Source: Podarcis muralis (lineage: Eukaryota). From it: DNA of 64,000 nt. The notes below the pieces were generated by a model. The model was given only the letters and a program-made list of their open reading frames with translations, had not been told where the DNA came from and did no database searches. Below are positions 10,017-48,000 of the stretch, piece by piece. Position numbers and translations under genes: made by a program. The stretch's first letter is position 1. Every line of letters begins with the position of its first letter. The stretch lies in NCBI RefSeq assembly GCF_964188315.1, contig NC_135670.1, positions 14,756,001 through 14,820,000 of the forward strand, written 5' to 3'.

Positions 10017-10063
<47 letters not shown>

Positions 10064-10064: not shown

Positions 10065-10090
10065 CCTTGCCTAGCTTTCTTTGCTCTTGA

Positions 10091-15424
<5,334 letters not shown>

Positions 15425-24700: not shown

Positions 24701-27700
24701 TCCTCAGGGATGGGGGCTCTTGCGCCAAGGACTTAGCGGAGTGCGTGGAGCTGCTGCTGCAGCTGGGCGAGCCTGCCGAGGAGCTGTGCGACGAGTTCCT
24801 CTCTCACGCCTGCTGCCGCCTGGAAGCTGAGCTGCGAGCCCTGGAGGCGGAGCTGGGCGAGGGGCAGCTGGCCACCCCGGCCACCGATATCCTGGAGTTC
24901 ACCGACCGCGGCTGCAACAACTTTGTCAGCAACATGTGCCTGGTGATTGCCTCATACCAAGAGCTGTTTGTCAGCCGGGAGGGGGCCCGTGAGATTGCCA
25001 GCATGGCCCACGACAAGCTGGTGGCCTTTGTGGACGGCCTGATGGAGCGCTACTTCGCCCTGGTGGAGAGGCGCATCCAGCTGGAGCGGGGCGTGGGCGA
25101 TAACTCCCTGCTGGTGCGGGCCCTGGACCGCTTCCACCGCCGCTTGCAGGCTTTGGTCAAGCTCTTGCCCGCCTCGCGGTCAGCGGCGGAGGGCACAGAA
25201 ATCGTGGTGCGGGCAGCCAAGGAGCGCATCCGCCAGTACCTACAGGCACTGCAGAGCTTTTACCTGGACTGCTTGACGGACGTGCGCCAGTCCTTGGCCG
25301 CCCCTCGGCTCATGGGGAAGGACAGCCCCAACCTGGCAGAGCTGCTGGCCACCATCTCAGCCTCCATCCTCAACCAGATCAAGTCTGTGCTCACCTACGT
25401 CCACCTCTTCACTGCCAAGGACATCACTTTCTCTAACAAGCCTTATTTCAAGGTAAGGAGAGAGAGAAAGAGATTTTGTTAGACTTCTCAGAGAGAAAGT
25501 TGCTTGCTGGAGCCCAGAGACTTGATACATTGCAAGAAATAAAAATGCGCATATGTAGAATTACATAAGGTAACCCATGGTGATACAAATTGTATGAGAG
25601 CCAAACCCTCTGTAGGCTTCACAACAAGACCCTTCCACTGCCACCAGAATCCCCATAAGAAACTCCTCCTTGGGTCCTGCTTTTGTAGGATGGACCTCTC
25701 TGATTGTGGGAGAAGCACCCCAGGATATCTCCCTTCCAGGGGTTAAGGCAGAGCTGGGTGTACCCAGCCTCTGTCTCTTTAGTTTACATTTTGGGATATG
25801 CAGCTGCCAGCCTGAAGCCTCTGCCTGCTCTGCGATGGGGCCCCATAGCTGCTAGTCCTCATGAATCCCTTCTCATTATGCCCCTCAGCCACTTGCATCT
25901 CTGAAAGATCCCTGCATTGCTGGGAGTTGGACTAATGACCTTTGGGGTCCCTTCCAGCCATACAATTCTATGAAATGTCTGAAATGAGGTTAGGGCTCCT
26001 TAACCCTTCTTCCCCAATGTGAACAGCCGTAGTGGCTTCCTGACAGTTCAGCAGCTGGTGGCCCCGTACTTGAACTGCCCCACATAGCTCCAGTCCTGCT
26101 ATGTGATTTCTCTCTTAAGAAAAGCAAAGGCTCAAAGCTTTCTCACCGCCTATGAGCAATGGGCTTTGCCAGCATCCTCCACTTCAGGCATCCCTCCCAT
26201 TTGTCAGTGTTCCTGCTGACCCAGTGAGTGGTTGAGGGACCCGAGGGGCGAACTCTGGCAGAGCCTCTGTCCCTGTTCTTGCAGGAGAAGGAAGGGTTAA
26301 AGAGCCCACCAACTCCCTTCAGTGCTGGCCCTGGAATCAAACTGTGGCTCATGTCAAGGCTGGGTGGCTGAGACTTTTTGCTGCGATGCCTCTAACTTTC
26401 CTCTGTGCCTCTCCTTGCTTTTTCCTAGGGGGAATTCTGCAGCCAGGGTGTCCGCGAAGGCCTCATTGTCAGCTTCATCAAGTCCATCTGCCAGACAGCC
26501 CGGCAGTTCTGTGAGAGCACTGGCGACAAGGGGGGCTCCACGCCCCCCACCCTGCTGCTGCTCCTCTCCCGCCTCTGCCTGGACTACGAGACCTCCACCA
26601 TCAGCTACATCCTCACTTTGACAGATGAACAGTTTCTGGTGCAGGTGTGTCACACGTGGGAAGAGAGGATGCTGGGAGTCATTTCAGGCTTGGGAGATTT
26701 AAATGGCTAGATTGGGGGGCAGAAGGGGGCTGTGCTTCCTTTCCTCTGCTCAGAACCGAGCTCATTGAGATCTGAATAAGGCCTCAGCTGTGCCATTATT
26801 CCACACAACTATGGAACAAACATAGGGCTTTGTTCCTTCTTTATATATACAAAGAAGCACATTTTAGACCTGCCAGTTTACTTTTAGAAGCCAACTACCA
26901 AACAAGAAGGGGGGGGAAGCATTACGCAAGCTCCGTAAACAGGTCTTTTAAAAAAACATATATAACATAATATTTAATGAAATAGCGGAAGCCAGAACTG
27001 TACATACTGTCCCATTTGCATCATCTCTCTCTGTGTGTGGCAGAGCTTGCTGATTTCCTTATTGCAGAATATGGGGATTGCAGTATGTGTGACTCACAGA
27101 ACTTTCTCAGCCAAGGGGCAGCCCCAAACGAGAAATCCTGGCTAGCTTGCTCCTGGCTTTTGGAGGGGTCCTTCCCTGTTGAGCATGTTGCTTGGTGTGT
27201 TCAGGTGTGGGGTGGAGGTGGGGTCCCCCCCATATCACAGGGCCAGAGTCTCTTTCAAGGGAAGTCATCTTATGCAGAGTCAATACTATTTATTAGAAAT
27301 GCATTAGAATTGGGTTTTGTCACTTTGGAAGAAGCTTGAAATGTAAGTATTGTGGCCCCTGCATTCCACATGTGTTGGCTGAGAATGAAATGTGTTAACT
27401 CCATTTATGGCTCTGGTCCTCTGTGCCGCTTCTTTGGTGACTGTGTCGATTAGCTTTCCAGTTGCTCCTCAGTCTTTCGGTCACTGCATAGGGCGCACCT
27501 GCTGCTTCCCCACCACCCCAGGAAACCCCTACATTTCTCGCCTCCTATAAAACATATACCGTATTTCATTTCTCCAGATGCAGTTCAGAAAGATGTAAAT
27601 CTCAAACCATTCAGAAACCAGCAAAGCCTATCCAAATATAGCCTGTTTAGTATTGGTATGGTGTAGCAGTTAACAGCGTGAGCTTTGAGCCAGGAAGTCC

Positions 27701-30700
27701 CTGGTTCAAATCCTGTCTCTTCTGGGAGCCTGTTGGATGACATTGGGCAAGCCAGTCCCTCTCAGCTTTTCCCACCCTCCACCTCCAGTTTTGTTCTTAG
27801 CGGACTGGCCTGCCTTGTGGCGAGGCCTCTTTATGTATCTAAAAGCCCCTTGAGTTTTCCAGAGCCCCACATCAAGCTGCCAAGTGTGCCACCCTTTTCA
27901 TCCTCCTCCTGCTCTGCTTTGCCTCTGGACCAGGACCACTCTCCCGTCACCCCTGTCACTGGCTTGTGTGCTGAAGCCCGGGAAGCCGCCCAGAAGCTGC
28001 TGAACCACTACGTGAAGGTGCAAGGCCTGGTCATCTCTCAGATGCTGCGCAAAAGCGTCGAGACGCGGGATTGGATCACCACCATTGAACCACGCAATGT
28101 CCGTGCTGTCATGAAGCGTGTGGTGGAGGATGCCACCTCCATTGATGTTCAAGTGAGTGGAGGGGGGGGGATTTCAGAAAACCACCCGGTTCCAGCTTCT
28201 TACCTTGCCTGTAAATGGAAAAGTCAGCTATAGGGTAAGATAGGGCACCATATGAGGAAGAAGGGGTTGGAATTTGGGGGTTTGTTCCTTTTTATCTATT
28301 TGTTTATTTATAATGATACCATGAAAATACCAGTTTCCAGTGTATCTATACGGAAAGCACATTAAAATTTAAAATCGGCTAATCGTCATGGAAAATGTAT
28401 TCTTAACAGGCTAAATAGGTTTGGCAGAATAGAAAAATTTTCAGCAAGCGTTGGCACAGAAGGCATCTGTTGAATCTCTAGTGGTGGAGCGTTCCACAGG
28501 ACTGGGCCAATGACACCAAAGGCTCTTTTTTTTGTTGATGTCAAATGAGCCTCACCAACTCGGGGAACGACCAGCGATGCTCCTGCAGATGTTCTCAGTA
28601 ATTGAGCTGAGATAGAAGAGCTTTGTCGGTCCCTGAGGCACCCTGGACCTAAGTTGGTCAGGGCTCTGTAAATTAATACAAATAGTAAATGGGCAGCCAG
28701 TGCAGCTGTTTTGACAGTGGTGTCATATGCTGCTTGTTACAGGGTAGGCGTGGGGTGCCAGGGGTCCTCACTTGAAAGAGGGTGAACCTGTGCAGAGGCT
28801 CCCTCTCCATTCGAGTAACTGCCTCACACGTTAATCTCCCCACGCAGGTTGGGCTTCTCTATGAGGAAGGTGTGCGCAAAGCCCAGAGCAGTGACTCCAG
28901 CAAAAGAACCTTCTCCGTCTACAGCAGCTCCCGGCAGCAGAGCCGCTACGCGCCAAGTTACACGCCCAGGTGAGCTGGGGAGGCAGGCCCTGTCCTTCCT
29001 GCTGGACGGGGAGTTTGAATCATCCCTAAATCATAAAGGAGCAGGCGGGGCACTGTGTGTATGTAATGCAACCTTGCAAATTGGCCCCTAAGAGTTTCTG
29101 GTTCGCAAGAATTGATGCTGGCTTGCCTGCCATGGATATCTCGCATAGTTATTGTGTGCCACAGGCCTGGGTGGAGGGAAAGAGATGTCCATCCAAACCC
29201 CTCTCCAGCAAGGCAGTTCAGGGGTCGGGGATGGTGTGCTAATCTCTTGGGCACGGCCCTTAGCCCCACAAGCAGTCAGCCACTCTGTGTGAGCCTCATC
29301 TCTTCTCTTCTCTCCCCAAGCGCTCCCATGGATACCAACCTGCTGAGCAATATCCAGAAGCTTTTCTCTGAGCGCATCGACATCTTCAGCCCTGCGGAGT
29401 TCAACAAGGTGAGGAGCCTGCAGTGGCCTGCTCTGTTGTGCTTCCTCCTGCCAAAGCACGTGAGGTTGGTGGCCTCTCTACAGGGGTGCCTGGATCTGCC
29501 TCTTGGGGAGATGTGCATGCACCCCACAGGGAGAGAGGAGCCATTGCCCTTGCCAACAGATGATGGGACTGATCTCTAGAAAGGGTAGCAGGTTCCTTTT
29601 CTTTGGTTATTGCTAGATATATATGTATATATCTTTCACTAGGGCTGCAGTTGCAGCCTGAACCTCATTCGATTACACCACTCAGATCAGGAGAGAACCG
29701 TAATTTTCTCAATATGTAGGGGAGGCGTCCGTTTGGGTTCTCCCTCTCAGTGTTAAAGGCTAATAGTTCACGGAGCTCCAATCTGCTTCTCCCCTCCCAA
29801 AATGCCTGATTCTCAGCGGAGCCCAGAATCAGAGCTTGTGGTCATCTTGGCACCTTTGCTGAATGAATCACCCGCCCTCTTTCAGTTTCTGAGCACCGTT
29901 TGGCTGCCACCAGGACAGAGGTGAATCAAGCCTTTATTAAGAAGCTTGTGATGAACATCCATGATGAAGGTCCTTAGTAAGACCTGGCCAGGATGGATGG
30001 TTAAGCTTGGCTGGTAAGAGAAGCCACATAAGTGCCTTTACTCTTGGGTCTTAGGTGTTCCCCTCTCTATTAGTTTTTTCTGTTTGTAATCATCAAAATT
30101 GACACAGCAATGTGTGATTGGGGCAGGAGGGCGAAGCCACAGGCAATGGCATTTGCCTGTTTTGTTGGCACTCTTAGGCCAAGTAGGTTGCAGAACATTA
30201 CCAATAAAGCAAGTGCAATTTAAATGAAAATCATAGAATAAAAACACAAAACGGCCATGCAAGGGGAAGGGAGGCACCCATTGACTTAACCAAAGGCCTG
30301 GCTGAAGAGAGGCATACTGAGCAGTTGTCCAAAACCATACAATGATTTCAGTGAGCACTTCCGGGGGAAAGTATCAGGAAAATATCTGTTGGGCAGATTT
30401 TTGGATCTTCAGTCTGCTGTCCATTTTTTAATCCTTTTCATCGTCTTCTTCCACTCAGGTCTCTGTGCTTACCGGCATCATCAAGATCAGCCTGAAGACG
30501 TTCCTGGAGTGTGTCCGCCTGCGAACTTTTGGCCGCTTTGGCCTGCAGCAGATCCAGGTGGACTGTTACTACCTGCAACTCTATCTGTGGCGCTTTGTCT
30601 CTGATGAGAACCTGGTGCACTTCCTGCTGGATGAGATTGTGGGCAGCACAGCCCACCGCTGCCTTGACCCCGTGCCCATGGAGCAGAGTGTCATTGAAGT

Positions 30701-30719
30701 CATCTGTGAGCGCGGCTAG
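21722..30719 (+). CDS. VPS51: GARP/EARP complex subunit VPS51, 10 exons, 779 aa
   Basis: Exons 21722-21913, 22932-23061, 23281-23427, 23681-23900, 24708-25452, 26429-26644, 27934-28152, 28848-28969, 29321-29408, 30459-30719 (2340 nt), all GT-AG and in phase. Motifs [42 protein letters not shown]-terminal [22 protein letters not shown] near 30845. Confidence 0.97.
24302..24570 (+). mobile_element. tRNA-derived squamate SINE (Squam3-like) with microsatellite tail
   Basis: A-box-like GTGGTGTAGTGGTTAAGAG head, a degenerate B box, and a (CAC)(TAC)(TTC) tail. The family name is tentative. Confidence 0.7.
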
Positions 30720-31106
30720 GGCACGAGGAGGGGGCTGGACCGGGGGGAAGGGCAGCTATGTGTCTGCACTCTTGTTCCCTGCCAGGTAGGGGGAGAACGG
30801 GAATGTCTGGCAGGTGAGACCTCAAAATATGTCAATGTGGTTGTAATAAATAAAGAATAACTTAAACCGTATTCACTGGTGAAGGCTATTTTGTTTCCGC
30901 AGCAGCCAGGAAACTGTAGCTCTGGATAAAATTAGACCGTGTCAGTTGCTCCTTTTTGCATGATTTCACGAGAGCATGAGAAAAGTCCTGCAGCAGCAGC
31001 TGGGACAGGCCAAAGGCTCATCCAGTCCAGCATCCTGTCTCTGTGGCCAACCAGATTTGTTCATTATTGTTATTCAATTTATATCCTACCTCCTTCCAAG
31101 GAGCTC

Positions 31107-31453
31107 AATAATAATAATAAAATTTTACTTATATCCCACCCTCCCCAGCTGAAGCCGGGCTCAGAGCGGCTAACAACAGTAAAAGTAACACAGTTTACAT
31201 AAAATCACAATCAATTAATTGAAATATAGTCTAAAATCAATTCATTCTAAACTCAATTCAAATCAAACCAATGGCAACCATTGGGCCAGAGCTCCGCGAA
31301 GATTGCCAGAGGAGGGGGTCAGGCTGTGCCCTGGCCAAAGGCCTGGTGGAACAGCTCTGTCTTGCAGGCCCTGCGGAAAGATGTCAAGTCCCTCAGGGCC
31401 CTAGTCTCTTGTGACAGAGCGTTCCACCAGATCGGGGCCACAGCCGAAAAAGC
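31107..31453 (-). mobile_element. L2 LINE 3' fragment
   Basis: (AAT)n tail at the left and L2-type 3' end sequence (gcgttccaccag...ggggccac...gaaaaagc) in reverse. Confidence 0.65.
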
Positions 31454-32332
31454 ATGCATGGGTCTCCCCCTTCCTCTGGAAGTGTATACTGGATTTTGAC
31501 CAAACTAAGCCTCCTAGAACTAAAAATACATCAGAAGACTTTTTGGTCAGAATCAGGTATACACTTCCAGAGTTAATGCTAAATACATTATACCTGGTAA
31601 ATGAGCCACCATAGTCACTAGAGGACTGTGAAAATTTGCATCCCAGGCTTTTTAGACTCGTCTACCCATGTACTAACTAAAACCCAAGGGGCACATGGGT
31701 TGCCAGATGTGAAATATATTGGCAATATTTTCGGCTCTCCTATACCACAGCTTCTCCAAACTGCTGAACTCAGTTCTGGGCTGAGTTCAGGGATTTCATA
31801 CAGAGGACTACAGTCCTACATTACATGCATGTGACATGCACAAGCTGAAAGGGACACGCAACATTGAAAGCTTAGGTCTTTCATTTCCCCCCTTCTTGAA
31901 ACATGTTGCTCTCCCTGCCCTCCCTGCCTTGCAAATGCAACTGTGAATAATTTTTAACCACCCCTTCTCAGAAAGTTGGTAGGGAAATGGGCAGCTGAGT
32001 GAAATTGCTTTCGGGGGCATATGTGGCACAGAAGGCTGAGAGTTCGCCACTCTGGCCTTAAATGCAAGATGACAAAACTACAAATGGAAATGATTCGCTG
32101 CTCTGGAGAGGACATTCCAGCAGGGCGACAAGGTACCTTGCCTGAAATTTCCACTTTCACCCAATGATACAAAGTGCAGGAAGCCTGTGTGCAGTTATTC
32201 TTGGGTAGACTTGGTTTTAGCAATCTTTAAGGATCTGTGTGCACCTAGGAAATGTTGCACTTGAGCTAGCATGGTGGAGGGCGGCGGCGGGGGGTGGGGG
32301 TGGGAACAGTAATATCTGCTGAAGGGCCCTCA

Positions 32333-32342: not shown

Positions 32343-32523
32343 CCAGTATTTCCCCATTATGCATCTTTCCAAATCACATTTGAGTCAACACAGGCTGTTG
32401 ACGTGGGGCCCAGAAAGGGAACTGCTCGGGTGGTGTTTATATGGGGCAAGGACTGTGCCAACCCATAAGCAGCAGCAGCAGAGAGAGAGAGAGAGAGTCT
32501 CATTTTGCACCAGCTTCAACACC

Positions 32524-33162
32524 ATGCCGAGGTTTCACCAAAGTCGCCCACTTTGGAGGGCTCCAAAAGGTGAGTGACAGAAGATAAAGTGGGGTTTGAG
32601 TCCCTCAATATGACTGGTCCTCTTTCTAGAAATTCAATAATTCTCCCCTGTCAGGTGAGTCATCAACTTTCAGGTTAGTGAAGAGCTTTAAGATGGGGAA
32701 GGCCCGTTACTCCGTGGCATAGGTGGGATGCAAATGTTTTTTTCACACTGGTCCTGAAAGACCTACATTGGCTCCCAGTACATTTCCGAGCACAATTCGA
32801 AGTGTTGGTGCTGACCTTTAATGCCCTAAACTGCTTCGGCCCAGTATACCTGAAGAAGCGTCTCCATCCCCATTGTTCAGCCCAGACACTGAGGTCCAGC
32901 TCGGAGGGTTTTCTGGTGGCCTTCTGGCAAGAAGTGAAGTTAGAGGGAACCAGACAGAGGGCCTTCTCAGTGGTGGTGCCCACCCTGTGGAAAGCCCTCC
33001 CATCAGATGTCAAGGAAATAAACAACTATCTGATTTTTATAAGACATCTGAAGGCAGCCCTGTATAAGGACTTTTTTAAGGTTTAAGGTTTTATTTTATT
33101 TTTATCTATGATGGAAGCCACCCGGAATGGCTGGGGAAACCCAGTCAGATGGGTGGGGTACA

Positions 33163-33204
<42 letters not shown>

Positions 33205-35880
33205 GCTGTTGTTGTTATTGTTCTTGTTACTACTCACAAGGCCAACAGCTTGAACTGCAGACATCAGCAGATGGCCATGACTTATCTCTTTACTGTGTGG
33301 GAGGAGGGAAGCTTTATTGCAGTTTTCTGCACATCAAGAGGGTGTTAAAAGGTGGTTAAAAGATGGTCTGTCCTTTTGCTGGTCAGTCTGCAACTCTATT
33401 GCTAGATCCCGTGCTTTGCATGCCCAAGATTATTCAGTTTGGGATATTGTGTAGCCAGTTTGGTGCAGTGGCTGTTGGGCTAGTGTCTGTGAGTCCAGGG
33501 TTCAAATCCCCACTCAGCCATGGAGCTCATTTGGTGATCTTGGGCCACTTGGGGTGTTGCAGGGAAGAAATGAGAAAGGGGAGGATCATGATTGCTGCCT
33601 TGAGCTCCTTAAGAGGAAAGGCAGAATATACCCGAAATTATAAAATCCTCACATTTCCAGTTAAAGGGTTATTGGACAAGCAGTGCTGGGAGCGGCCTCG
33701 GCACAGGAACACCCTGAAGAGCTCTTCCTGCTGCCCATCAAATGAGACAATATTGGACCACTTTGTGTGTTTGTTGCAGAGGTGGCATTTAAATCTGGGA
33801 CTATCAGCAGCCAAATTATGCCATCTCTCTGATCAGTCAACTGTCAAAGCTTCTTCTTGCCCCATTAAACTTGAGGAAAGTTAGGACAAGCTGTGCTAGG
33901 AAAATGAACAGGGAACTAACAAATGTCCCCTTTCTTCTCTCTTAATTGCCAGCTCCTTTTAGTAGGATCATCTTCTTGCTGGTTTTGGGGTCCACTGTTG
34001 ACAGCCAGCCCCGCTGCTACCATACCAAAGTGAATTCTCTGCTGGTGGCCAATTGCCAAGCTCAAAGACACAAGGAAGTCCCTGAAATGGACAGCTCCCT
34101 TCAGGTCCTCTTGCTGAACTTCAACTTCTTATCCAACATCTCGGATTCCTCCTTCTCCCAAATGCCGTCCCTGAAGATGCTGTCTCTTGGGAAGCAACTG
34201 GGAGGATCCCTCTATGTCGGAGAAAGGGCGTTTCAGAATGTGCCCAGTGTCAGGATCCTGGATCTTGGTGGCAACAAGAACTTGACCTTGCACCCAGCTG
34301 CTTTCCACGGCCTCACCCAGCTTGAGGTGTTGCTCTTGGATTTCAATGGTTTTGACGAAGAAGTACTGGAAAGAGGTTATTTCCAGGATTTGGTATCACT
34401 GAAGAGGCTGGATCTTTCTGGAAACCGCATCCGTAGGCTGAGGCCTGATCCAACTTTCCAGGGCCTGAGGAAGCTGAGTGTCCTTCAGCTGAAGCTCAAC
34501 CAAATTGGGGAAATCTGTGGGGAAGACCTACAGCACCTCAGGGGGCACCATTTGGCCTTGCTTGACCTCTCATCCAACCGACTGCTTAATCCCAATGCCT
34601 GCACCAACCCTTTCTTCAGCATCGTGCTGGGAACTCTGGACGTCTCTTCGAACTCATGGAACGCGATGGAAGCTCAGAAGTTCTTCACACGACTAAATGG
34701 CACTCGAATCCATAACCTCAAGATGCAGCACTCAGCCGCCCTCGGCAGCGGGTTTGGTTTCCGTAACCTCAAGGGCATCTCGCCCAGCACCTTTCTTGGC
34801 CTCCGTGGCAGCGGAGTTTACTCCTTCGACATGTCCAATGGCTTCCTCAGGGAATTGGGCCCATCTGTCTTCTCGGGGCTCCCAGACCTCAACATCCTGC
34901 TGTTGAGATCCAACCAGATTACTGAGATCAAGGATGGGGCCTTCTCTGGGCTGAGCCAATTGCGTATTCTCGACCTGTCCCACAATCTGCTTGGGGAGCT
35001 GTACACAGAAGCCCTGCGACCCCTGAGGTCATCCCCACTCCAGCACCTCATCCTGAAGTCCAACCACCTTGGGATTGTTCAACACGATGCCCTGGTGGGG
35101 CTGAACTCCTTGCAAACCCTTGACCTCCGGGACAATGCTCTCGTGAGGGTCCCGGCGGGGAAACTCCCATCCCTTCTGCGCCTGATGCTGGGGCAAAACA
35201 GGATTGGGGATGCCTGGGGTCTTGAACGTCTTAGCAGCAACCTGACCCACCTTGACTTCTCCTCCAACCGCCTGAGTGACTTAGGGAGTCTCTGGGGTCA
35301 ACTAGGGGAAAACCCCACCTTGCGTTTCCTGAATCTCTCAGGCAATCAGCTGGCAACGTGCTTCAGGGCTGAGAGAGGCCCCGGGCAGCTCAGAGAACTA
35401 GATATTTCCCATAACGACCTGGGAAACATCTGGAAAACAGAGAGCTGTGCGGACATCTTCCAGCATTTGGAGAACCTTAGAGTCCTGAATCTCAGCTCCA
35501 ATGGCCTTCGGGCCCTTCCTGAAGGACTTTTCCAGGGTCTGGTGTCTCTCCAGACTCTGAATCTCTCTGACAACCTCCTGCCCATCATTCCTGAGGAGGC
35601 ATTCCTCAGCTTGAAATCCTTGCGCAGCCTTAGCCTCCATGGGAACCCCATAGTGACCCTTTCCCACTCTACATTTCAACCACTGGTGCAGCTGCAGTCA
35701 TTGGACCTGAGCGAGTTGTCCTTGCTGTGCGACTGTGGACTTTCTGACTTCCAGAGTCTGATGCAGGACAAAGACTCAAGGCTGAGTGGAGCTGTGGCCA
35801 ATCTCCTGTGCATTCAAACCAGCCCTGATTTCCTGCATCTCTCCTTGTCCTGGTTCCTCCAGAGCAAGTGTGCCCAATAA
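32524..35880 (+). CDS. Soluble Toll-like receptor 5-like protein (TLR5S type): signal peptide, LRR ectodomain and LRRCT, with no TM or TIR domain; about 657 aa
   Basis: Uninterrupted LRR ORF to the stop at 35880 with TLR5-diagnostic segments (LDLGGN, ICGEDLQHLRG, CTNPFFSIVLGTLDVSSNSW, GSGFGFRNLK, LSHNLLGELY, LDLRDNAL). It ends CDC...C...KCAQ*. There is no in-frame ATG before the acceptor ttgccag|33953. The proposed first exon 32524-32569 (accATG...AAAG|gtgagt, phase 1) joins in frame to give MPRFHQSRPLWRAPKAPFSRIIFLLVLGSTVDS. The large exon is near-certain; exon 1 is inferred. Confidence 0.88.
32745..33205 (+). mobile_element. L2 LINE 3' fragment in TLR5S intron 1
   Basis: Peptide LHWLPVHFRAQFEVLVLTFNALNCFGPVYLKKRL...RAFSVVVPTLWKALP typical of the L2 ORF2 C-terminus, followed by a (TAT)n tail at about 33163-33203. 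Confidence 0.85.
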
Positions 35881-36887
35881 TATGTTACGACCCAATATGG
35901 GGATTGGGATGGAGAACAAAATCTTATCCCACAGGATGCGGGATGCCATCAAGCTGCACAGCAGTGCCAAAATCTGTGTTCCAGTTATCAAAAAAAAATG
36001 CCTCATTGTCCTTTTCGCATGCCTGGGAACATCCATTTGGTAGGCCCATAATCTCTGTGTATTCAAGTAGCAAAGGCCAAATTGCTGACGTTTCGTAACT
36101 CACACCCCCAAGCTGGCTTTTTGTTTTTTGTTTTTGTTTTTTTGCTTCTGGCATGTGTAAGCAAAACAATCCAAACACACACAGAGAGAGGCAAATGCTG
36201 TGTGATTGCAGGCCCTCCAAATGTCCCGATTTTCCAGGGACAGTCCTGGAAGTGAGTCTACCCTCCTACTCCCTGCTGTCAAAACTGCCCATTCCAATTC
36301 CCTCTCCCTTTGCTTACTAAGTCCTAAACGACTTGGGTCCAAAGTATGTGAGAAACGTGCTTTCCTAGAGATGCTACCTATCAGTTCTTGGTAGTTCCTC
36401 CACCCTCAGTAATTTGGGGTGTGGGTGTGTGATGATTAAAATGCATTTTGTATCTTTAAACATGGTTTTAGTAAGTTGATAACCCTAAGAAGCAGAAGCT
36501 TTAGAGCCAACTTGTGGATTTGGCAACCTAGCAAGTTAAGTAACCTACTACTGTATTTATTTATTTTATTTACCTATTAAATTTATATACCGCCCTTCCT
36601 CTGAGGATCACAGGGTGGCTTAAGTATAAAAACACAAAAATACATAACATAGTTTGAACAAGGTTTTTTTTAAAAGACGTGTATACATTTAATGAAATAA
36701 ATAACGTTTGTTAGAGATACTTATGCTGATGATGTATTCATACATAAATGCTTTTAAAACATCTCTCCTTTCATTATCAGTAAAACTGTGTCCTTAATCC
36801 AATTAGATTGATCATTAGCTTTGCCGAGTAATTCAGCCTTGAAAGCAATCCAAGGTGACCTGGCAACCTGAACAGAACAGTTAACAC

Positions 36888-36888
36888 A

Positions 36889-36914
<26 letters not shown>
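36888..36914. repeat. (TG)n microsatellite
   Basis: Direct reading of the sequence. Confidence 0.9.
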
Positions 36915-36919
<5 letters not shown>

Positions 36920-37485
36920 GAGTGATCAGGTTTTGCTTACAGAGGACTAAGAAGCTAAGAAGCAGGGTTGGCCCTAACTTTGAACCTACGCAAATGGAAG
37001 TTCCAGCGCATGTGAAAAGGACAAATATTGAGACAATCATGGATTATTTGGGCAAAGGGAAAATGCCTGCTTCCGCAGCCCAGCACTGTTTTCTACATCC
37101 TGTGGGGTGGGATTTCCTTTGCCATGTGTCTATGGAGGCAGTTCTGTTTCAGTGCCGACACCAGGAAGGCAATTTGGGGCAGAGAAGACCGAGTGGGAGA
37201 AGGCAACTGGGGAAAATATTACAATGTGAAGAAAGGATTATAATTCAGAAAAGACTTAAACAGCAGAATTCTGAAGAGTCAACACATATCTGCAGGCCTC
37301 ACTTTCCCCCTATGTTTGGTTGTTACAGAACCCTTGCTCGGATTCCTTGGTGTGTGTACTCCTGAGTGTGTATGAATTTAGGGTTTGTGTGCTGCTAGGT
37401 TAGGGTAATAGCTTCATTCCAGCTTCTCTCTCCCTTTTTCCCAGAGTCAGTCTCCACAAGGGATAAAACACCTCACTGTTTAAAT

Positions 37486-37793
37486 CACGGGTGTCAAACA
37501 CAAGGTCCGCGGGCCAAATCCGGCCCGCCAGACCTCATCATGTGGCCCGTGTAGCCGCCGCCGGCCACCAGCCTTCACCTTTTATTCTCGCTTTTTTTTT
37601 TTTTACACAAGAAAGCCGCCTCTTCAGCGCATGCACAGCAGCCTACAAGCCAGAGAACGTCTGCCCTCTAGCGGCGCCGGCCGTTCTACATAGGAAACCT
37701 CCACTTTACATGCAAGATACAGATACAACCGGTCCTTTGAGGGTGACCAAATTGCTCGTACGGCCCCCGATGAATTTGAGTTTGACACCCCTG
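37486..37793. mobile_element. hAT MITE
   Basis: TIRs CACGGGTGTCAAAC / GTTTGACACCCCTG. 8-bp TSD GTTTAAAT at 37478-37485 and 37794-37801. Confidence 0.85.
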
Positions 37794-38157
37794 GTTTAAA
37801 TATTTTGCTAGGTAATAAAGTCTTGAACTTTCATTTTTGGTCTGGATTTTCCCCCTATACATTCCCTTGCAAAGGAAAAAACCCCCAGATTGAGGTTTAG
37901 TTGTTCATCTTTGTCTCCTTGCATTCCCTTTGCAAAACAAAGGTTCTTGCGCGTCTCAGGCCTGATCAACTTGACACGCACAGCACCCTCTCACAAACTC
38001 ACTGTACTGAAAATAATGGACACATGGTCTATGTGGGTCTTCCATAAAGAACTCCTAATAAAGAACTCCTTGCAGCTACTTTGAATGGAGATTGCCTTGC
38101 GATGGCACACTGCTTTGGGCTTGATCGCAGAAGCTTGGTACTCACGGATATGGTCTA

Positions 38158-38383
38158 CGGTGGTACCTCGGGTTACATACGCTTCAGGTTACAGACTCCA
38201 CTAACCCAGAAATAGTGCTTCAGGTTAAGAACTTTGCTTCAGGATGAGAACAGAAATCGTGCTCCAGCGGCGCAGCAGCAGCAGGAGGCCCCATTAGCTA
38301 AAGTGGTGCTTCAGGTTAAGAACAGTTTCAGGTTAAGAACGGACCTCCGGAACGAATTAAGTACTTAACCTGAGGTACCACTG
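38158..38383. mobile_element. Tigger-like MITE, copy 2
   Basis: Same family as 20948-21174, in the opposite orientation, TA flanks. Confidence 0.9.
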
Positions 38384-39199
38384 TATATCCCTATCCGAAA
38401 AACCGACTTGCCAAATCTGAGCAGCCAAAGGGAAAACAAACCCACACCTTTTATACAACACACGGCATTCACACACCATTTGAATGGCAATGCGCATCAA
38501 ATGGGGGAGGGGCGGCCCCCTCAATTATTATTATTTTTGGGGAGGGGGGGTCGAAGGGACCTCGGTTACAAGGAGTTGGTGCCTATGAGGCCAGCGAAGG
38601 AGATAATACCATGGTTATGCTGCAGCGCCCCCAGGTGGACAAACAGCCACAGCCACCATCACATCATTGTGGATGAGCTGGTTTTGCAGAAAGCAGGTGC
38701 TGTTGAGATGCCAGACTCCAAGCAGCGCCTTAATTAAAAGGCCACTTACAACAGAAGAGCCGAGTCATGCACACTGCCTCGCGTAAAAAAGGTGGGATAT
38801 AAATAAATAAAATTCCTGTGGCTTAATGGAGACTTGAAGGCAGTATATTTTTTCCATTTCAGAAACAACAGGCGAGATTTAAAAGCCATCTCGACGCGTC
38901 CTGGTGTTTATTTCCGTTTTGGTCCATTCCCCCCACCCCCAGTTGTTCATTTCTCCACTGAACTCCAATGCATTAGAGCAGGAGGCGTTTTGCACTCTGC
39001 GTATGCCCAGGCACTCTCTTTTCCTTCTCATTAGCGCATTCTTCCACCACCAAGGGAACCCAGGACGGCGAAAGCGAAGGATTGGGACACCACCGTCCAC
39101 CGCCCACTCCCTCTTCTGTCCTCTCCCTTTTCACCACCACGATTTCATTTCTTTCCTGCGGGCGCCTGGATGCACGAACAGGGCTGGACGGGACGGGAT

Positions 39200-39381
39200 G
39201 AGCAGTGAGGCGGGCCCGCCTCCTCTCGCCTGATAGGCTCCGCGCCCTCCTCCCTCGGGCGCGATTGGCTGCTCCGGGATAGGGACAGGATGGGCAGAGG
39301 GTGGCGCCGCTGATGCCGGGCTGATGCGGGCGGACAGGTGGCCGGGACAGGTGAGCGCCTCCCGCATCCAGGCGCCGCCAG
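39200..39381 (+). promoter_or_regulatory. TM7SF2 CpG-island promoter and non-coding/alternative first exon
   Basis: GC boxes 39209-39220, SRE-like CTCGCCTGAT 39225-39234, inverted CCAAT 39264-39268, donors cag|gtgagc (39350) and cag|gtaagc (39381). A matching acceptor tctag|42006 lies upstream of the ATG. Confidence 0.6.
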
Positions 39382-40056
39382 GTAAGCCTTCCTCCGGTGT
39401 GTCCCCTCTCCCGTGCCAGAGGATGCCGCCGCTGTTGCTGGCGGGATCGGGAGGGCCGGTGGGTGGGGCAGACATGCGCGGGTCCCTCTCGGGATGCACA
39501 CAAGCCAGGCAGGGGAGTGTGGTCCCCGCGGGGGAGGGTGGATTTAGGGACCTTCCCGAAAGGGCCAGCCCGACCTGAGATTGGCATCCTCGCCAGCAAC
39601 GCTTCCGCTGGGCTGGGAAAGGCCACCGTCTGGAACTGCAGCGCCGTCGGTGGATGCGGAGCTTAGGCGCAGCAAGGACCGGCGGAGAATGAGGCAGCTG
39701 CCTTTTCTACAGAAAAGACGAATTTTCTACAGAAACATGAGGACTGGGAGCTTGCTCCTTTCTTTTAGGGGAAAGGTGGCGGTAGCTCAAATGGGAGGGC
39801 GCATGTTTTGCACGGAAAAGGTCCCCGCACCCACCCCGGCCAGGTTCAATCTCTCTCTCTCTCTCTTTCACACACATTTGAGGGTGGCTGCTGGGCAGGC
39901 AAGATGGGGACTGATCCAGTATGGCAGCTTCCTATGAGGGTTGGATCCTGCATCCAGACCTGCAAGGCATCTGACATCTCCCTCTTTTGAAATGTATTGA
40001 GGTCAGCAGCAGAACTGTCCTCCTCAGAAGCGCCACAAATTTTGACTGCCAAAGTA

Positions 40057-40298
40057 CAGTGGTACCTCGGGTTAAGCACTTAATTCGTTCCGGAGGTCTG
40101 TTCTTAACCTGAAACTGTTCTTAACCTGAAGCACCACTTTAGCTAATGGGGCCTCCCGCTGCTGCCGCGCTGCCGGAGCACAATTTCTGTTCTCATCCTG
40201 AAGCAAAGTTCTTAACCCGAGGTACTATTTCTGGGTTAGCGGAGTCTGTAACCTGAAGCGTATGTAACCTGAAGTGTATGTAACCTGAGGTACCACTG
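40057..40298. mobile_element. Tigger-like MITE, copy 3
   Basis: TA|CAGTGGTACCTCGGG ... GAGGTACCACTG|TA with a duplicated subterminal 16-mer. Confidence 0.9.
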
Positions 40299-42080
40299 TA
40301 CCTTGAATTACTTCATAATGTTGTTGGCCTCAGTCTGTTTCAGGAAACAATGGGCGTGTGTGCCTTTTTTGGGGGTGGGTGAAGTCAAGCTGTTGGAAGA
40401 TTATGGTGCCTGCTGTGGCCGTTATTTAGGGGTGCAGACACTTTGGGGGTGATGCAAATGGCACAGATTTCAAGCGTGCACCTTGTCAGGTTGTTTAATA
40501 GTTCTTGAAGATACACACAAAGGCCATGTTTTTCAAAATACATACAAAAGCCATGTATTTCAAAGGTTGGCAGTTCTCTCGCTTATGAGGACAAATCTGC
40601 CACAGGCTGTTGGATCCGGAAGATTCTTTGTTGGAGGGTTGCTTTCTCTGCTGGAGACAGGGAACTGGGCTGAGAACTTCAGACAGAGACTACAAAGCAG
40701 TTAGCATGTTCTTAATGCTAAATTACGAAACTGACAGGACTCTAAAGGAGAGGAGGAGAAAGGCCAATTCATTTTGCAACCAGTAAATCAATTAACAATT
40801 TCACAGGGATGAGGCTTCAGTTGAGAACCAGTGTGTTGTAAGGCATTTAAAGACATCCCAACTAAGCCTGGAAATTGTAATTTGTTAAGGGTGCTGGGAA
40901 TTGTAGCTCTGTGAGGGGCAAACTGCAGTTTCCAGGATCCTTGAGCAGGGATGCTTTAAATGCGTGGTGTGTTGGCAAACCTAGACCATGAAGGCCTAAA
41001 TTCAAATCCCTAATTGGCCATGAAACTCTCTGGATGACCTTGGGCTAGTCACACACACAAAAATACCACAGTGGACTCCTAGGAGGAAAGGTGAGGAATA
41101 GGATGGGTGTGTGCTGGGACTCACGTTTCCCTTGTTCTAACAGTGTCCAGATGTGTCTGGAGGGCTTAGTGGTGAGAGAGCAAGCACTCCCAATATGCTC
41201 AGAGGCACTTGATCGTAACTTTGAGAGGTGTGCTTTGGTGCCAGAAATGGGTGGTGAAGCTCAACCTTGGCAAGCGCCAACTCCAATTTTGTGCAGCTGG
41301 AGACTTAAGTGAGGAGCTTGACACACTCTTGGGCTCATGACCCCCAGAAGTGGGGTAGGGGGTACACTTTGCACCTGCTATTTGAAATAATTGCACCCAA
41401 ATATTTATCCTGAGTTGCAAGTTTTCTGGGAAAGGGAAGGTGGACTTGCCAAGCACTAGTTTAGAATACGAAACATCCTTCCCGGTTATGATGGTTGCCT
41501 GGGGAAGAGTCTGGAGAGATGCTGCCAGCCAGTGGAACCAATACTGAACTCGATGGGACAACAGCCTGACTCTGCCAAAGGCAGCATCCTGTATTCCTAT
41601 GAGAGGTGCTCACGAACCAGTAGCACTTTGTATCGACTGGAGGTCTGTTCCAAAGGGTTCACAATGCTGCGCATACCTTACAACAGCCCTGTGAGGTAGA
41701 CTAGTGGCAGATGTCTAATGGGACAGACATGACAGTCTGACAAGCATGCCCTTCCTCTGGAATCCCAGCCTCCAGCTGGCCAGCTTTTGTTGGCTGTGCC
41801 CTCCTGGTGATTAATGTCTAAAAAAAGAAGGGGACCTGGGCGGAATTATTCCACGGGCAGGCGGCCTTGCATGTAAGGCACAGTCAGTTAGAAAGAATGT
41901 GGCTTCTGTTAACAGGCGATCCAAATCAGCTCAAACACACGTGGGGGGATACTCAGAGGCTTGTCTCAAGGGTCTCTGTTTGGTCTTCATGGATTCTTTC
42001 TCTAGGTCTGTGTGTGGTTGCTGAAGACCGGGGAAACTTGCAAGAAGAGGTTTCTGGCCCAGGACCTGCTCAAGAGGACA

Positions 42081-45000
42081 ATGGATCGACTGAAGGTCCC
42101 CCGCACCAGAGAGCTGGAATTTGGAGGCGTCCTAGGTGAGGGGAGAAGGCTGAGCTCAGGGTGGGTGTGTGCAGGCAGAAGAATACTGTTATAGATTGGG
42201 TGCAGGGGCTAAACCTTAGAAATTAGTAAATGGTAAGATTTTTATTATTTGGGGATGCGATACAGGCTGCGGAAGAATTCCTGAGCTATACTATGCCAAA
42301 CGACCTGGCCAAGCTTAGGGCCGTTAAGAAACAATACAGGGTTATTGAGGGCCATTGTCAATGCAAGAGAACTGTCCTTCTCCCCGCCCCCCACTTGCCC
42401 TGAGTTGTGAACAGAGACTGGGAGTTCAGAAGGTTGCCAGGATAACTTGGTGTTGTATGACAAGAAAAGATAATTTTTAGCAAGGTGTGCTGGGAAGAAG
42501 AAGGGGGAGAGAAGAAAGACTGGGATCCATCTTGGGCAGGCTGGCTGAAGGCTGGCTGGGAGAGATGCCAGGGCTGCACTGCTGTGGGGGACAAGCCCCT
42601 CTTGAGATGACCATGCTTTAAGATCTGGACTCCATGCAGACTGAAGGTGTAAATAGGTGAATAAACCATATTTCTTAAAGCTACGACAGTCTCCAAAGGG
42701 AGCCTGGGTGAGTGCCTGGAATCCCATGGACTCTGGCTACTGCTCGGCAGAGAGAGGGGGAGGCACTCAACTTTTGTAACTATACCTTTCTCTCATCCCT
42801 CCCCAGGAATCCTCTATTAGGGAGGCTTGGGAATGGTGTGAGCAGGGGATGCAGGACTCCTGGGTTCTGTCTCTTCCCCTTTCTGACCGCTCCATCTTTT
42901 TTCATCACAGGGGCTGCCCTCCTTATCGTCCTGATGCCCACCACTGTCTTCTACCTCCTGTTGACTTGCAGAACGGAGCAGGCCAGCCTGTTGAACATCC
43001 CCTATCCTTTGCCCACCCTCCGCTCCCTGTGGGACCCCCGGGACTTTGCCCTAGTCTTGGCCTGGGTTGGATTGCAAGCTTTCTTATATATGCTCCCGAT
43101 GGGGAAGGTAAGAAGACCTCCACACTCTCAAGGGATTTTTCCTGGCTTCTGCCACGGACTCATTCTTGCCTGCGCTGCAGTAGGGTTCTGCAGCCTGGCC
43201 TCAGTTTTCCTCATCTGCACAATGGGGAGAAAGGCTAGCTGGTCCTACTAGTAAAATGGCAGAAATGGGGAATTGACATCAGAAAACAGCGGCAGCCCTT
43301 GGCTGCAGAGGGACCCTTGAGTCGTGGGGAAAGGCCAAAGCAGCCCTCTGTCTTTTTATTTTCCCAAAGTGCATTTTGAGCATTCCTCTCCCACCAGAGA
43401 TGCTTCCCCCTGGCTCCATATAAAGCAGAGTTTCCCAAATGTGGGTCTCCAGCTGTTGTCGGGCTACAACTCCCATCATCCCTAGCTGGCAGGACCAGTG
43501 GCCAGGGATGCTGGGAATTGTAGTGTTAACTGTTGGGAAATTGTGTACGTGCAGCTACTCACACAGAGTCAGTTAAGGTTTGACAATCTGAAGGAGTAAG
43601 TCTGCCTGGTGATAACAGAGACATGGGGAGAGCTCCCTGATTGGTCAAGCTCTTTGTAGGGAGTGATAATTAATGGCCTCCTAACTGGAATGTGTTAGTT
43701 CAGTATTCAGAGCTCAGTGTTCAGAGTTCTGTGTGTCAGTGTAGGAGTTGTGAGTCGTGTCAGAGAGAGCTAGCAAAAGATCCGTGTTCTGTTCCTGTAA
43801 ATAGTCCACTGTATATAATAAACACCTAACTACAAGTTCCTGCTTCCTGCTTCGTCTAGCCTGTCTGCAGCCAAGTCGCCAATTGCTTCCATGGATTCTG
43901 CGTGTACTCTGCTAGGTCTGGCTAAGCTCCTGCAACTAGTCAGAAAGTTGCGAAACACCAAATAGGTTTTGCCAATATTAACAACAGCTGGAGACCCAAG
44001 TTTGGGAAACCCTGATATAAAGAAAGCACCCTGCTTTCAGGCAGCCCTGGCAACACAGACCCCACCACCGCTTTCTGCATCTGTGTGTGTTTTCAACAGC
44101 TCACAGAAGGGACCCCCCTGCGAGACAAGACCCGGCTCCAGTACCGGATTAATGGTAAGTGCCCCCCACCCTTAGGAAAGGTCCCCCAGAGGTGAGACGG
44201 CCGCCAGGGGTGTTGCTGGTGGCTCTCAGCAATGGGGAGGGATGTGGTGCTGAGTGGCCTTTCAGCGTATCCCAGTGTTTCAAGACTGAGAACATTTTAT
44301 TAAACGCCACCTCGTGATTCTCCCCAAGTTTAGCCATATCAGTATTGGCTTAGGAAGGCAGGGGGGGGGGCAGGAGGGATGATAAATTGATGTCTGGTTG
44401 TTGTTTGTTTGCCCCACCCTCCTTCTCCCCCTGCCCTACATTTCTCAGGGTGCCATGCCATGGTGGTCACAGCGCTGGTGGTTGGAGCCGGCCTGGCGGC
44501 TGGACTGCGCCTCAGCTACATCCACGACCATTTCCTGCAGTTGGCCTTCTCTGCCTCCCTCGTGGCCTTCGGACTCAGCGCCCTCCTGTACCTCAAGGCC
44601 TTGCTTGCCCCACAGGCAGCCCTGGCCCCAGGCGGGAACTCAGGTGAGGTGCGAACCCTGACACTGGGCTCCTTCTGGCCTCCTTTGACAGCTCCACCTC
44701 GGCAGGGACTAGCGACTTGATGGGCATGGCCAAAACCCATCAAATGTCCCGTGTCTGGTGCAAGCTGGTGGTGGGGTGGCAGGAAGGAAAAGGAAGGGGG
44801 GAAAGACTGAAGCCGTTATCTCCTCATGTGAATTGGCTGGCAAAATCGGATAAGGACCGTCTCCCGGGGATGATACGCCATTTAAAAAAATAACAGAGAG
44901 ACCTGCAGTCCTTTTAAGGCTCATTCATTTCTTTTTTATATATATAATATTTTATTAAATTTTCAAATACAAAATCAACAATCTACATACAAGATCCCTT

Positions 45001-48000
45001 CACCAAAGAAAAAATACACAAAAAAGTCAGAACAAGAAAAAAACAAAAGAAAAGAGAAAAACTCAAAAAGAAGTAGAATAAAAAGATTAAGAATACAATT
45101 TTATATAACCAACTGGACTTCCTCACATCTCCTTTACCCCGCATTATTTATAATAAAGAAAAACCAGCAAATTATTACCTTGTTTCAAACCTTATTCTAT
45201 ACTTTCCAAATATTTTACTTCTTGATTTAAAGTGATTTTTATCAATTACTCATACCTTAAAATTAAACATAATATTGCCTTAAATTTCAACCTTGAGGCT
45301 CATTCATTTCTAGAGGCAGGAGTTTTTGCAGGAAAACGTCCACCACTTATGTAGCATTATTCTTGCTGATATTATTGTTATACAGCAACGGTATAAAAAT
45401 CGCTACGTGTAAAAATGATAAAATACCCAGGGGACGCAAATTGTTATTCCCAGTTGGCAATTACCTCTTCGTACATGTAATTTGCATCGTTATGAACACA
45501 CGGGAAAATGCGAATAGGCCAGAAAGGTCTTTGGGAATGCAAAGGGCTAAGATCACCCAGGGAGCTTCATGAGTGGGGATTTGAACCCTGGTCTCTCAGG
45601 TCCTAGTCTGGCTCTTTTACACTGAGACATGGTGACTATAAGATCAGCTGCAGAGCATTCTGGGAGGCTGTGTGTTCTTCCTCTGGTTTCTGAGCATATA
45701 CAGTGGTACCTCAGGTTACAGACTCCGCTAACCCAAAAATAGTACCTCAGGTTAAGAACTTTGCTTCAGGATGAGAACAGAAATCACATGGCGGCAGCAG
45801 GAAGCCCCATTAGCTAAAGTGGTACCTCAGGTTAAGAACAGTTTTAGGTTAAGAATGGACCTCCAGAACAAATTAAGTTTTTAACCCGAGGCACCACTGT
45901 ATGCTGAAAATGTGGGCACAACGTTCTGCCAACACTTCCCTGCTTCACGGGGGTGCAGCTGCCTAGAGGGGGGTGTCAGAACCACCTCCCCAAAGTGTTT
46001 TTGACGGCGATTTCTCCTGCTTGCCTCTTTCCCCATCCCACAGGAAATCCCATTTATGACTTCTTCATGGGCCACGAATTGAACCCACGGATCAATACCT
46101 TTGACCTGAAGTTCTTCTGTGAGCTGCGCCCAGGTCTCCTCGGATGGGTAGGCATCCCTGCACTGGTAGCAGAAGGCAGGGTTGGGGAGCGACCCCTTTG
46201 TGTTGGTGTGGCAGCGCCAAGGAGTGCCCCTCCCCCCATACTGGAGGGTCCGGATCGCTGGGGATCAGGCAGCCGACACAACTGGGATCCAGTATGGTGT
46301 TGTGGTTGGAGTGCTGGGTGCGGACTGCGGAGATGCGGATTCAAATCCGCCTGTAGAGCAGGTGTGGGGAAGCTTTGACCCTCCAGATGCTCCTGAACTA
46401 CAACTCCCTTCAGCCCCAGCAATGGCCAATGACGACAGGAGTTGTAGTTCAGCAATATCTAGAGGGCCGAAGGTTGCCCACCCCTGCCATAGAGCTGGCA
46501 GCAACCTCCCCTAACCGGGTGGCCTTCAGATTGTTTTCACGTCTTTCGGGGCCATGCTCTCGCAGGAGCCAAAATGGGACATCCCAGGAGCCAATCGGAA
46601 GCCAGAATGGCTTTGTAATTCTGGGGTGTCCTGCTTAAAACAGGACATTTGAGGGGTATGCCACAAGCGGTAGCTTTTGCTACTACTAATGGTGATGAGG
46701 ATAATACTGCTTTCCCCCCTCTGCCACCCGCTGCTTCCCTGCTCTCTCGTAGGCCCTGATTAACATGGCCATGTTGGTGAAGGAGACGGAGCTGAGAGGA
46801 AGCCCTTCCCTGGCGATGATCCTCGTTAATGGCTTCCAGCTTCTCTACGTGGTGGATGCCTTATGGCACGAGGCAAGTCTGGCCAAGGGTGGGATCTGAA
46901 CTGGCTGGCCTGCTGGCCTGAGTTTTGCAAGGAGCCTTAATTCTTCAGTTTCTGCCACGGAGATGCATCACAGGAACTGCCAGGCTGAGCTTACAAATGA
47001 CACCCATGTATGGGTTTTTTTTGGTGATTTCCTGCACTTCCTTCCATAAGGACTAGAAACTTGCTTTTGTCTTTTAAAAAAGGAACAGAAACAAAAGCAG
47101 GGATTTCCAAACTGCTCCCCTTCCCTAGTGTCGATTTCAGTCAAGCCTCCCAGGGGCTCAATAAACCTTCTTTTGCCTGCTTGGCTGTAAACAAAGAACA
47201 CAAAAAGAGAAATTGACACAACGTGTGCATGTCGGGCTGTTTTCATCCTAGTGGACCTCAATTCTGCTCATGTTCCTCCTTCTGAATTTGGGGTGCGCCC
47301 CTGGGGGAGGAAGGCTTACCTGTCCTCCCTAGTACCTGCTTCCTCAAATCACCTGAACCTGTTTGACTGTAGCCACTTCTCTGAAATGCACCCGCTCCCC
47401 AGTGTGTGGCTTGCAGTGGGTTTGTTTAGTGGGGACTGAGAGTTGGTGGATTTTCCTGGGCCAGATTTAAAAAGGCAAATTTTCTTCCTTCCCAAAGGAG
47501 GCTGTTCTTACCACGATGGACATTGTCCATGACGGTTTCGGCTTCATGTTGGCTTTCGGGGACTTGACGTGGGTGCCCTTTTTGTACACCCTTCAATCGT
47601 ATTTCCTCGTCACCCACCCACAGAAGCTGAGCCTGCCCATGGCTGGGGGCATCACCCTGCTAAATGGTGAGTTGGGCGGCAAACAGGGCCTCTGAGCATG
47701 CTCAGAATATATTTTCTTCCCCTCCAAGCTTCAGCAACTTTATTTTCTTTTCGTGTCAGGGGTCTAATAACGTAGCCAACTTGCTCTTAACTAAGCTTCC
47801 AGAATGGGAAGGGATATAAAGCCTTAATCAATTGATAGTAAAGAGTGGGGTCTTTGTACATTTAAAAACAAACAGGCAATATTCACAATTTCCACTGTGT
47901 CAAAGATAGGCAGCCCCTCTTTGCAGAGTGCCCCTACCCAGTGCCTAAGCTGGGGTGTGGATTGTGCCTGCTACCCGGAAACAATTATTTCCTGAGTTTG

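Follow-up and report, generated by a model that had tools for sequence, protein, structure and literature searches.

The subject of this analysis is a 64,000-nt stretch of the Podarcis muralis genome, referred to here as the window, and all coordinates are window positions. Between VPS51 and TM7SF2, on the + strand, the window carries a two-exon gene for a protein that resembles the ectodomain of Toll-like receptor 5 (TLR5) and has neither a transmembrane (TM) segment nor a TIR domain. We identify this gene with high confidence, which covers both its identity and its architecture, as the lacertid orthologue of TLR5L, a secreted-type TIR-less paralogue of TLR5. The gene is already known. TLR5L, or TLR05L, has been described in newts, turtles, and the anole (Babik et al. 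2014, PMC4316619; Liu et al. 2020, PMC6946030), and the remark in a preliminary description of this locus that the family may not be new was correct. For a reptile genome, TLR5L is an ordinary gene. It consists of the following parts:

32524-32569, + strand: coding part of TLR5L exon 1, with the ATG, 15 codons, and the first base of codon 16 (MPRFHQSRPLWRAPK), followed by GTGAGT
32570-33952, + strand: TLR5L intron 1, GT..AG, 1383 nt, with interspersed repeats and a (TAT)n microsatellite inside
33953-35880, + strand: TLR5L exon 2, with the remaining signal peptide, LRRNT, the run of leucine-rich repeats (LRRs), LRRCT, and the stop codon TAA at 35878-35880
34735-34773, + strand: LRR9 loop codons (AALGSGFGFRNLK), corresponding to the hot-spot pocket for flagellin in TLR5
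35728-35871, + strand: codons of the LRRCT cysteine cluster (C608, C610, C635, and C655), with the stop two codons beyond

Gene, transcript, and protein

The open reading frame (ORF) list contains an uninterrupted frame of 644 codons at 33946-35880 (+). The first in-frame ATG sits deep inside this frame, and the translation start must therefore lie elsewhere, in an upstream exon. The frame is entered through a splice acceptor (a pyrimidine tract and CAG), and exon 2 begins at 33953. The splice phases of the two exons are compatible (G + CT = Ala). The joined coding sequence (CDS) of 1974 nt encodes 657 amino acids with no internal stop and is as long as that of the Lacerta agilis model (P0001). 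The protein N-terminus, MPRFHQSRPLWRAPK from exon 1 and APFSRIIFLLVLGS... from exon 2, agrees with the NCBI models of L. agilis (MLKFHQSRPLWRAPKAPFSR...) and Rhineura. The exact junction has been found in a 1201-nt RNA contig of run X5, in which 32508-32569 is joined to 33953 and 1383 nt bounded by GT..AG are skipped; the 5′ untranslated region (UTR) extends to 32508 or further. The junction exists in RNA, i.e., Podarcis TLR5L is transcribed and spliced.

Other features have been observed in and near the gene. RNA word depth lies in the thousands at 32600-33200, in the intron, and at 38156-38199, 3′ of the gene. Many reads at these positions continue into unrelated sequence, and 38156-38199 has "goes back 16" joints; both stretches look like abundant interspersed repeats rather than parts of TLR5L. 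The intron also holds, at 33165-33215 and 33470-33545, a (TAT)n/(TGT)n microsatellite, seen as a poly-Tyr pseudo-ORF, and a stretch, with ...GGTTCAAATCCCCACTCAGCCATGG at its end, similar to a tRNA-derived short interspersed element. One kb past the stop, 36927-37604 is covered by RNA contigs of runs X1 and X5 and contains a 168-codon frame with no Pfam match, and for this stretch a long 3′ UTR, a repeat, and a separate transcript are all possible. Candidate poly(A) signals lie at 36435, 36576, and 36696.

In the 657-aa protein, Pfam finds LRR families only and no TIR. By sequence, the closest solved structures are human TLR5 (3j0a, 2.8e-94) and zebrafish TLR5b (3v47, 1.8e-58); TLR3 and other LRR proteins give far weaker matches. 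Over residues 42-626, LRRNT through LRRCT, the protein aligns collinearly with the ectodomain of human TLR5. The protein ends in ...SWFLQSKCAQ, so that, as the preliminary description had stated for an intact TLR5-type ectodomain, the stop falls two residues past the last LRRCT cysteine (C655 of 657). The sole hydrophobic stretch is N-terminal (IIFLLVLGS), with a top Kyte-Doolittle 19-residue mean of 1.25 and values <1.1 elsewhere, and no TM candidate has been found in the protein by this hydropathy measure. Judged by eye, a basic n-region, the hydrophobic core IIFLLVLGS, and a c-region of small residues make up the N-terminus ahead of QPRCY. Seven N-glycosylation sequons are present. The AlphaFold model, obtained with 34 orthologues as input, has a pLDDT of 88.8 and a pTM of 0.86. 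Its TM-scores are 0.82-0.83 against the zebrafish TLR5 fragments 5gy2 and 6bxa (root-mean-square deviation 2.6-3.3 Å) and ~0.7 against full-length TLR3 ectodomains, and the modelled fold matches the TLR ectodomain horseshoe. Because only a signal peptide and a complete TLR5-type LRRNT-LRR-LRRCT horseshoe are encoded, the predicted 657-residue glycoprotein should be secreted and cannot signal alone.

A TM-TIR half elsewhere in the window has also been searched for. A hidden Markov model (HMM) of the TM and TIR, built from the C-terminal ends of 27 TLR5 proteins and run without filters on all six-frame fragments, found nothing in the whole 64-kb window; its best match (E 0.19, at 55946) lies beyond TM7SF2. 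Relaxed tblastn with three TLR5 C-termini against 35881-42885 gave nothing below E 0.08, and the positive control, a fish TLR5 locus, gave E 3e-50. A downstream TM/TIR exon has been rejected, as both searches gave chance-level matches only, and a 23-residue tblastn match that recurs at 36658-36726 has been rejected as a TIR remnant (E 0.4-5, chance level). Among the RNA reads and contigs at the locus, none leaves the large exon toward a downstream site, although contigs cannot prove absence. Pfam, hydropathy, the HMM, and tblastn thus agree with the earlier reading of a protein without TM or TIR, and the splicing to a downstream TM-TIR exon that had been named as evidence against it has not been seen. 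In most orthologues of lizards, snakes, turtles, frogs, and caecilians the stop lies 0-3 residues after the same last cysteine. The truncation after the LRRCT is therefore old and maintained.

The Podarcis and L. agilis CDSs differ at 70 nucleotides and 32 amino acids, and the ratio of nonsynonymous to synonymous substitution rates (dN/dS) is 0.28 (NG86) or 0.45 (YN00). Identity between the two species is 96.5% in the exons, 89.5% in the intron, and 87% in downstream DNA. Purifying selection is evident from these sequence comparisons, and the gene is not a pseudogene. A dN/dS near 1 without expression, mentioned beforehand as a sign against a working gene, is not what has been observed, given these ratios and the spliced RNA contig. 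It is highly improbable that the gene is a truncated TLR5 duplicate in decay, or the 5′ portion of a membrane-receptor gene with its TM-TIR exon downstream. Against both stand the lack of TM/TIR similarity across the window, the stop kept just past the LRRCT across tetrapods, a dN/dS <0.5 with an exon much better conserved than the intron, and the RNA joints described above.

Relatives, locus, and age

The closest protein is that of L. agilis (657 aa, 95% identity), which carries the NCBI name "toll-like receptor 5". Other short TIR-less relatives are 60-78% identical to the Podarcis protein in squamates, 54-58% in turtles, 44-51% in amphibians, 44% in lungfish, and 46% in sturgeons and paddlefish; the tuatara has a partial model. 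TIR-bearing TLR5s reach 35-40%. With the sturgeon protein as query, a bichir member has been recovered as well. The holders of TLR5L are lizards, snakes, tuatara, turtles, amphibians, lungfish, and basal ray-finned fishes, a range much wider than the lizards to which the preliminary description had assigned the gene. No TLR5L of archosaurs, mammals, gar, bowfin, teleosts, coelacanth, or sharks has been found in protein searches seeded with Podarcis and sturgeon TLR5L, in agreement with the earlier statement that mammals lack it. TLR5L appears to have been lost in mammals, archosaurs, and neopterygian fishes, that is, in several losses.

The TLR5 tree was rooted on lampreys, whose TIR-less TLR5-like proteins were used as outgroup only. 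Tetrapod TLR5L and the lungfish, bichir, sturgeon, and paddlefish proteins form one clade (support 100/98) with the internal order of the species tree. The Podarcis gene lies in it with amphibian and reptile TLR5L, apart from membrane TLR5 (TLR5M) and from the soluble TLR5 of teleosts (TLR5S), which nests within teleost TLR5M. Forcing TLR5L and TLR5S into one clade costs 199 log-likelihood units and is rejected by the approximately unbiased test (p-AU 4.45e-24). Grouping the sturgeon short form with teleost TLR5 is rejected as well (p = 0.0056). Also, fugu TLR5S is flanked by an EF-hand/ZZ gene on one side and a kinesin gene on the other, in place of VPS51 and TM7SF2. Teleost TLR5S is a separate invention and is not orthologous to TLR5L. 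The likeness to TLR5S drawn in the preliminary description therefore holds as a functional analogy and fails as orthology.

Two further TIR-less models have been considered and rejected. The lamprey proteins of TLR5 type are ~720 aa long, and the river lamprey gene (L005, 10001-12163), tried as a deeper orthologue, lies between Amnionless and a ZNF/ELM2 gene with no shared synteny. A catshark short form of 648 aa (P0067) nests in shark TIR-bearing TLR5 and has no neighbours within 10 kb. Independent truncation or an incomplete gene model may account for both.

The window is collinear with the L. agilis locus (L001). The neighbouring genes in Podarcis, and the arrangement in other species, are as follows:

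24709-30721, + strand: VPS51 3′ exons (the gene continues upstream), from collinear tblastx with the sturgeon and turtle loci; VPS51 Pfam families lie upstream in L. agilis
42886-50252, + strand: TM7SF2 exons (sterol C14-reductase, ERG4/ERG24 family), from tblastn using the TM7SF2 portion of the Lerista fusion model P0018
L. agilis: VPS51, TLR5L, TM7SF2, order and strand as in Podarcis
Turtle (Emydura): VPS51, TLR5L, TM7SF2, order and strand as in Podarcis
Caecilian (Rhinatrema): VPS51, TLR5L, TM7SF2, order and strand as in Podarcis
Xenopus tropicalis: TM7SF2 5 kb 3′ of TLR5L (TM7SF2 side only)
Bichir: 420-aa ERG4/ERG24 gene 4.6 kb 3′ of TLR5L, same strand (TM7SF2 side only)
Atlantic sturgeon, tblastx: window 24709-30721 (VPS51 exons) collinear with sturgeon 942-6953
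Atlantic sturgeon: short TLR5 gene at 10001-11995, between the VPS51 and TM7SF2 matches
Atlantic sturgeon, tblastx: window 42886-50255 (TM7SF2 exons) collinear with sturgeon 15935-20488

In lungfish, no neighbour gene of TLR5L has been found within 10 kb. The exon matches on both sides, on the + strand, support the earlier placement of the gene between VPS51 and TM7SF2. The word "inserted", which the preliminary description had used, does not fit, since VPS51 and TM7SF2 flank TLR5L in L. agilis, turtle, caecilian, and sturgeon, and TM7SF2 adjoins it in Xenopus and bichir. The same slot in tetrapods and in sturgeon and bichir predates the ray-finned/lobe-finned split. The slot is ancestral to bony vertebrates, and mammals are the lineage in which the arrangement changed. 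That a TLR5 ectodomain was inserted or retrocopied here in lizards only, as the nearly entire CDS in one exon and the adjacency of human VPS51 and TM7SF2 (presumably without an intervening gene) might suggest, can be dismissed. This reading is already refuted, since turtle, caecilian, frog, sturgeon, and bichir have the gene in this slot and in this orientation, the gene tree follows the species tree, and the upstream coding exon and intron are conserved in L. agilis.

In many NCBI records, TLR5L and true TLR5 are both named "toll-like receptor 5". Also, a Lerista model (P0018) fuses TLR5L to TM7SF2, and Rhinatrema TLR5L (P0033) is named "VPS51 isoform X4". Given the shared names, the VPS51-TM7SF2 slot is a simple and reliable marker that separates TLR5L from true TLR5.

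Two other features of the locus have been observed. Next after TM7SF2 lies a 512-codon frame with a HIT zinc finger (52618-54153, - strand), followed by an assembly N run at 54235-54432. This frame is probably ZNHIT2, which follows TM7SF2 in mammals too, and the sturgeon locus matches it as well (window 52664-52885 to L002 21033-21254). Between VPS51 and TLR5L, ~660 bp at 30930-31594 are absent from the collinear locus of L. agilis, an indel that is probably a repeat insertion.

TLR5L, found in newts by Babik et al. (2014, PMC4316619), has been called "unique to some tetrapods", and Liu et al. (2020, PMC6946030) place its origin "in the history of amphibian taxa". In a fish TLR5 survey of 2023, non-teleost fishes are given one TLR5M gene only, and sturgeon goes unmentioned. 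A whale-shark genome paper remarks in passing on "TLR5/5SL (possibly both)" in the jawed-vertebrate ancestor, and a TLR5L clade as old as bony vertebrates agrees with this remark. TLR5L is older than published accounts state, which is, along with the conserved slot, a modest new point. As bichir, sturgeon, paddlefish, and lungfish carry the gene, a secreted-type TLR5 protein is an old component of bony-vertebrate immunity, apparently with several losses, and with one re-evolution in teleosts.

A still older origin is possible, and we put it forward tentatively, as doubtful at present. TLR5L may be an ancient sister gene of TLR5, perhaps an ohnologue left by the 2R whole-genome duplication, and not a late copy of the ectodomain. 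This idea derives from map positions: TLR5L adjoins TM7SF2, and human TLR5 (1q41) lies ~2 Mb from LBR (1q42.12), the TM7SF2 paralogue. The regions 11q13 and 1q41-42 share the paralogue pairs CAPN1/CAPN2, CNIH2/CNIH3, MARK2/MARK1, and ESRRA/ESRRG. Near TLR5M/TLR5S of grouper and fugu, no LBR-type gene has been found within 10 kb, the reach of the search. A duplication of TLR5 and TLR5L after the shark split is disfavoured at a borderline level only (p-AU 0.044), and the larger tree leaves the order of the TLR5L clade relative to shark TLR5 ambiguous. If the ohnologue reading is true, a secreted flagellin-binding arm would have been part of the ancestral jawed-vertebrate TLR5 system; it would then have disappeared independently from neopterygian fishes, archosaurs, and mammals, and teleosts would have evolved it anew as TLR5S.

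The LRR9 loop and the proposed function

Flagellin binds TLR5 mainly via the LRR9 loop, the pocket of which accepts a conserved arginine of flagellin domain D1. In zebrafish TLR5b, the pocket is formed by Y267, N268, G270, S271, S272, H275, N277, F278, and K303 (PMC5247705). The lizard loop AALGSGFGFRNLK aligns without gaps and at equal length with zebrafish YNMGSSFGHTNFK, and the alignment with human -IMGAGFGFHNIK is gap-free inside the loop, with a gap of one residue immediately ahead of it. The equivalents of zebrafish G270, S271, and N277 are retained. In the 34 TLR5L sequences, from sturgeon to lizard, G265, F270, and N272 (GxxFGFxN) are invariant, and the LRR9 loop motif is common to TLR5L and TLR5M of all classes. 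Residues 264-270 of the loop are a low-pLDDT part of the AlphaFold model.

By analogy with trout TLR5S, we lean toward TLR5L being a secreted flagellin-binding protein that works with membrane TLR5. The protein would bind the flagellin D1 hot spot via the retained LRR9 pocket. Acting alongside membrane TLR5 in body fluids, it would then either pass flagellin on and strengthen the signal, an effect reported for trout TLR5S, or buffer it. Several observations weigh against this proposal. Both papers that describe TLR5L state its ligand as unknown (PMC4316619, PMC6946030). The pocket wall differs from that of zebrafish TLR5b by Y267A, N268A, and K303F, with F at the K303 position in human TLR5 too. 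The signal peptide has been judged by eye rather than by a predictor. At the RNA level, the splice junction has been supplied by one run only (X5), and two bulk RNA-seq runs with the same species label contain almost no reads on the TLR5L exon, from which we conclude that expression is low or tissue-restricted. The contigs of run X1 contain 75% of the k-mers but do not place on the TLR5L exon.

TLR5L may instead have taken on another ligand, i.e., it may be a secreted LRR pattern-recognition protein for which flagellin is no longer the ligand, or not the sole one. The published statement on the ligand, the wall substitutions Y267A and N268A, and the low identity to TLR5 ectodomains (35-40% only) all point in this direction, as does the positive selection reported in one newt lineage (PMC4316619). 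On the other hand, the GxxFGFxN motif and the length of the loop have been kept in all examined TLR5L and TLR5M sequences for >400 million years, and several of these wall positions also differ between zebrafish TLR5b and human TLR5, which binds flagellin. We regard a change of ligand as unlikely.

We assign a similarly low probability to TLR5L being purely a decoy, one that ties up flagellin and weakens TLR5 signalling instead of helping it. Soluble receptor ectodomains are often decoys, and TLR5L has no signalling domain. Sequence features do not separate a helper from a decoy mode, and the sole studied analogue, teleost TLR5S, has been reported, in papers that cite Tsujita 2004, to be synergistic with TLR5M.

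Comparison with known TLR5-type systems

The TLR5L of amphibians and reptiles is the same system. The likeness consists of a ~650-aa ectodomain of the TLR5 subfamily, without TM or TIR, in the same clade (100/98). The dN/dS published for nine reptile TLR5L sequences, 0.236 (Liu et al. 2020, PMC6946030), is similar to the 0.28-0.45 obtained here, and there is no difference in kind. Liver-biased expression has been reported for newt TLR05L (PMC4316619), and in a frog study of 2025, TLR5L expression was consistently upregulated upon bacterial infection. Beyond the published TLR5L, the present analysis adds the conserved VPS51 > TLR5L > TM7SF2 position and the bichir, sturgeon, paddlefish, and lungfish members.

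Canonical TLR5 (TLR5M; PDB 3J0A, 3V47, 5GY2) shares with TLR5L the collinear LRRNT-LRRCT arrangement, the horseshoe fold, and the LRR9 loop motif GxGFGFxNxK. It differs by its TM helix and cytoplasmic TIR, both of which are absent from Podarcis TLR5L, and its identity is 35-40% only. A canonical TIR-bearing TLR5 also exists in lacertids, with 904 aa in Podarcis (P0128), and the view of TLR5L as a second flagellin-type receptor fits this coexistence. The two genes lie at different loci, with TLR5L of most squamates on a contig of 9-40 Mb and TLR5 on one of >120 Mb. Across squamates other than four geckos, and in turtles, the contig with TLR5L is small (9-51 Mb), and TLR5 has another contig, in most cases much larger; in the four geckos, both share one chromosome-scale contig (196-286 Mb). 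This distribution fits a TLR5L location on a microchromosome that is fused in geckos.

Teleost TLR5S, described as a soluble protein in trout and fugu (Tsujita 2004 and Tsukada 2005, as given in papers that cite them), is the best functional model for TLR5L. Both are secreted-type TLR5 ectodomains, of ~640 aa in the case of TLR5S, and liver-biased expression has been reported for TLR5S as for newt TLR05L. Unlike Podarcis TLR5L, TLR5S is derived from teleost TLR5M and lies among other neighbours.

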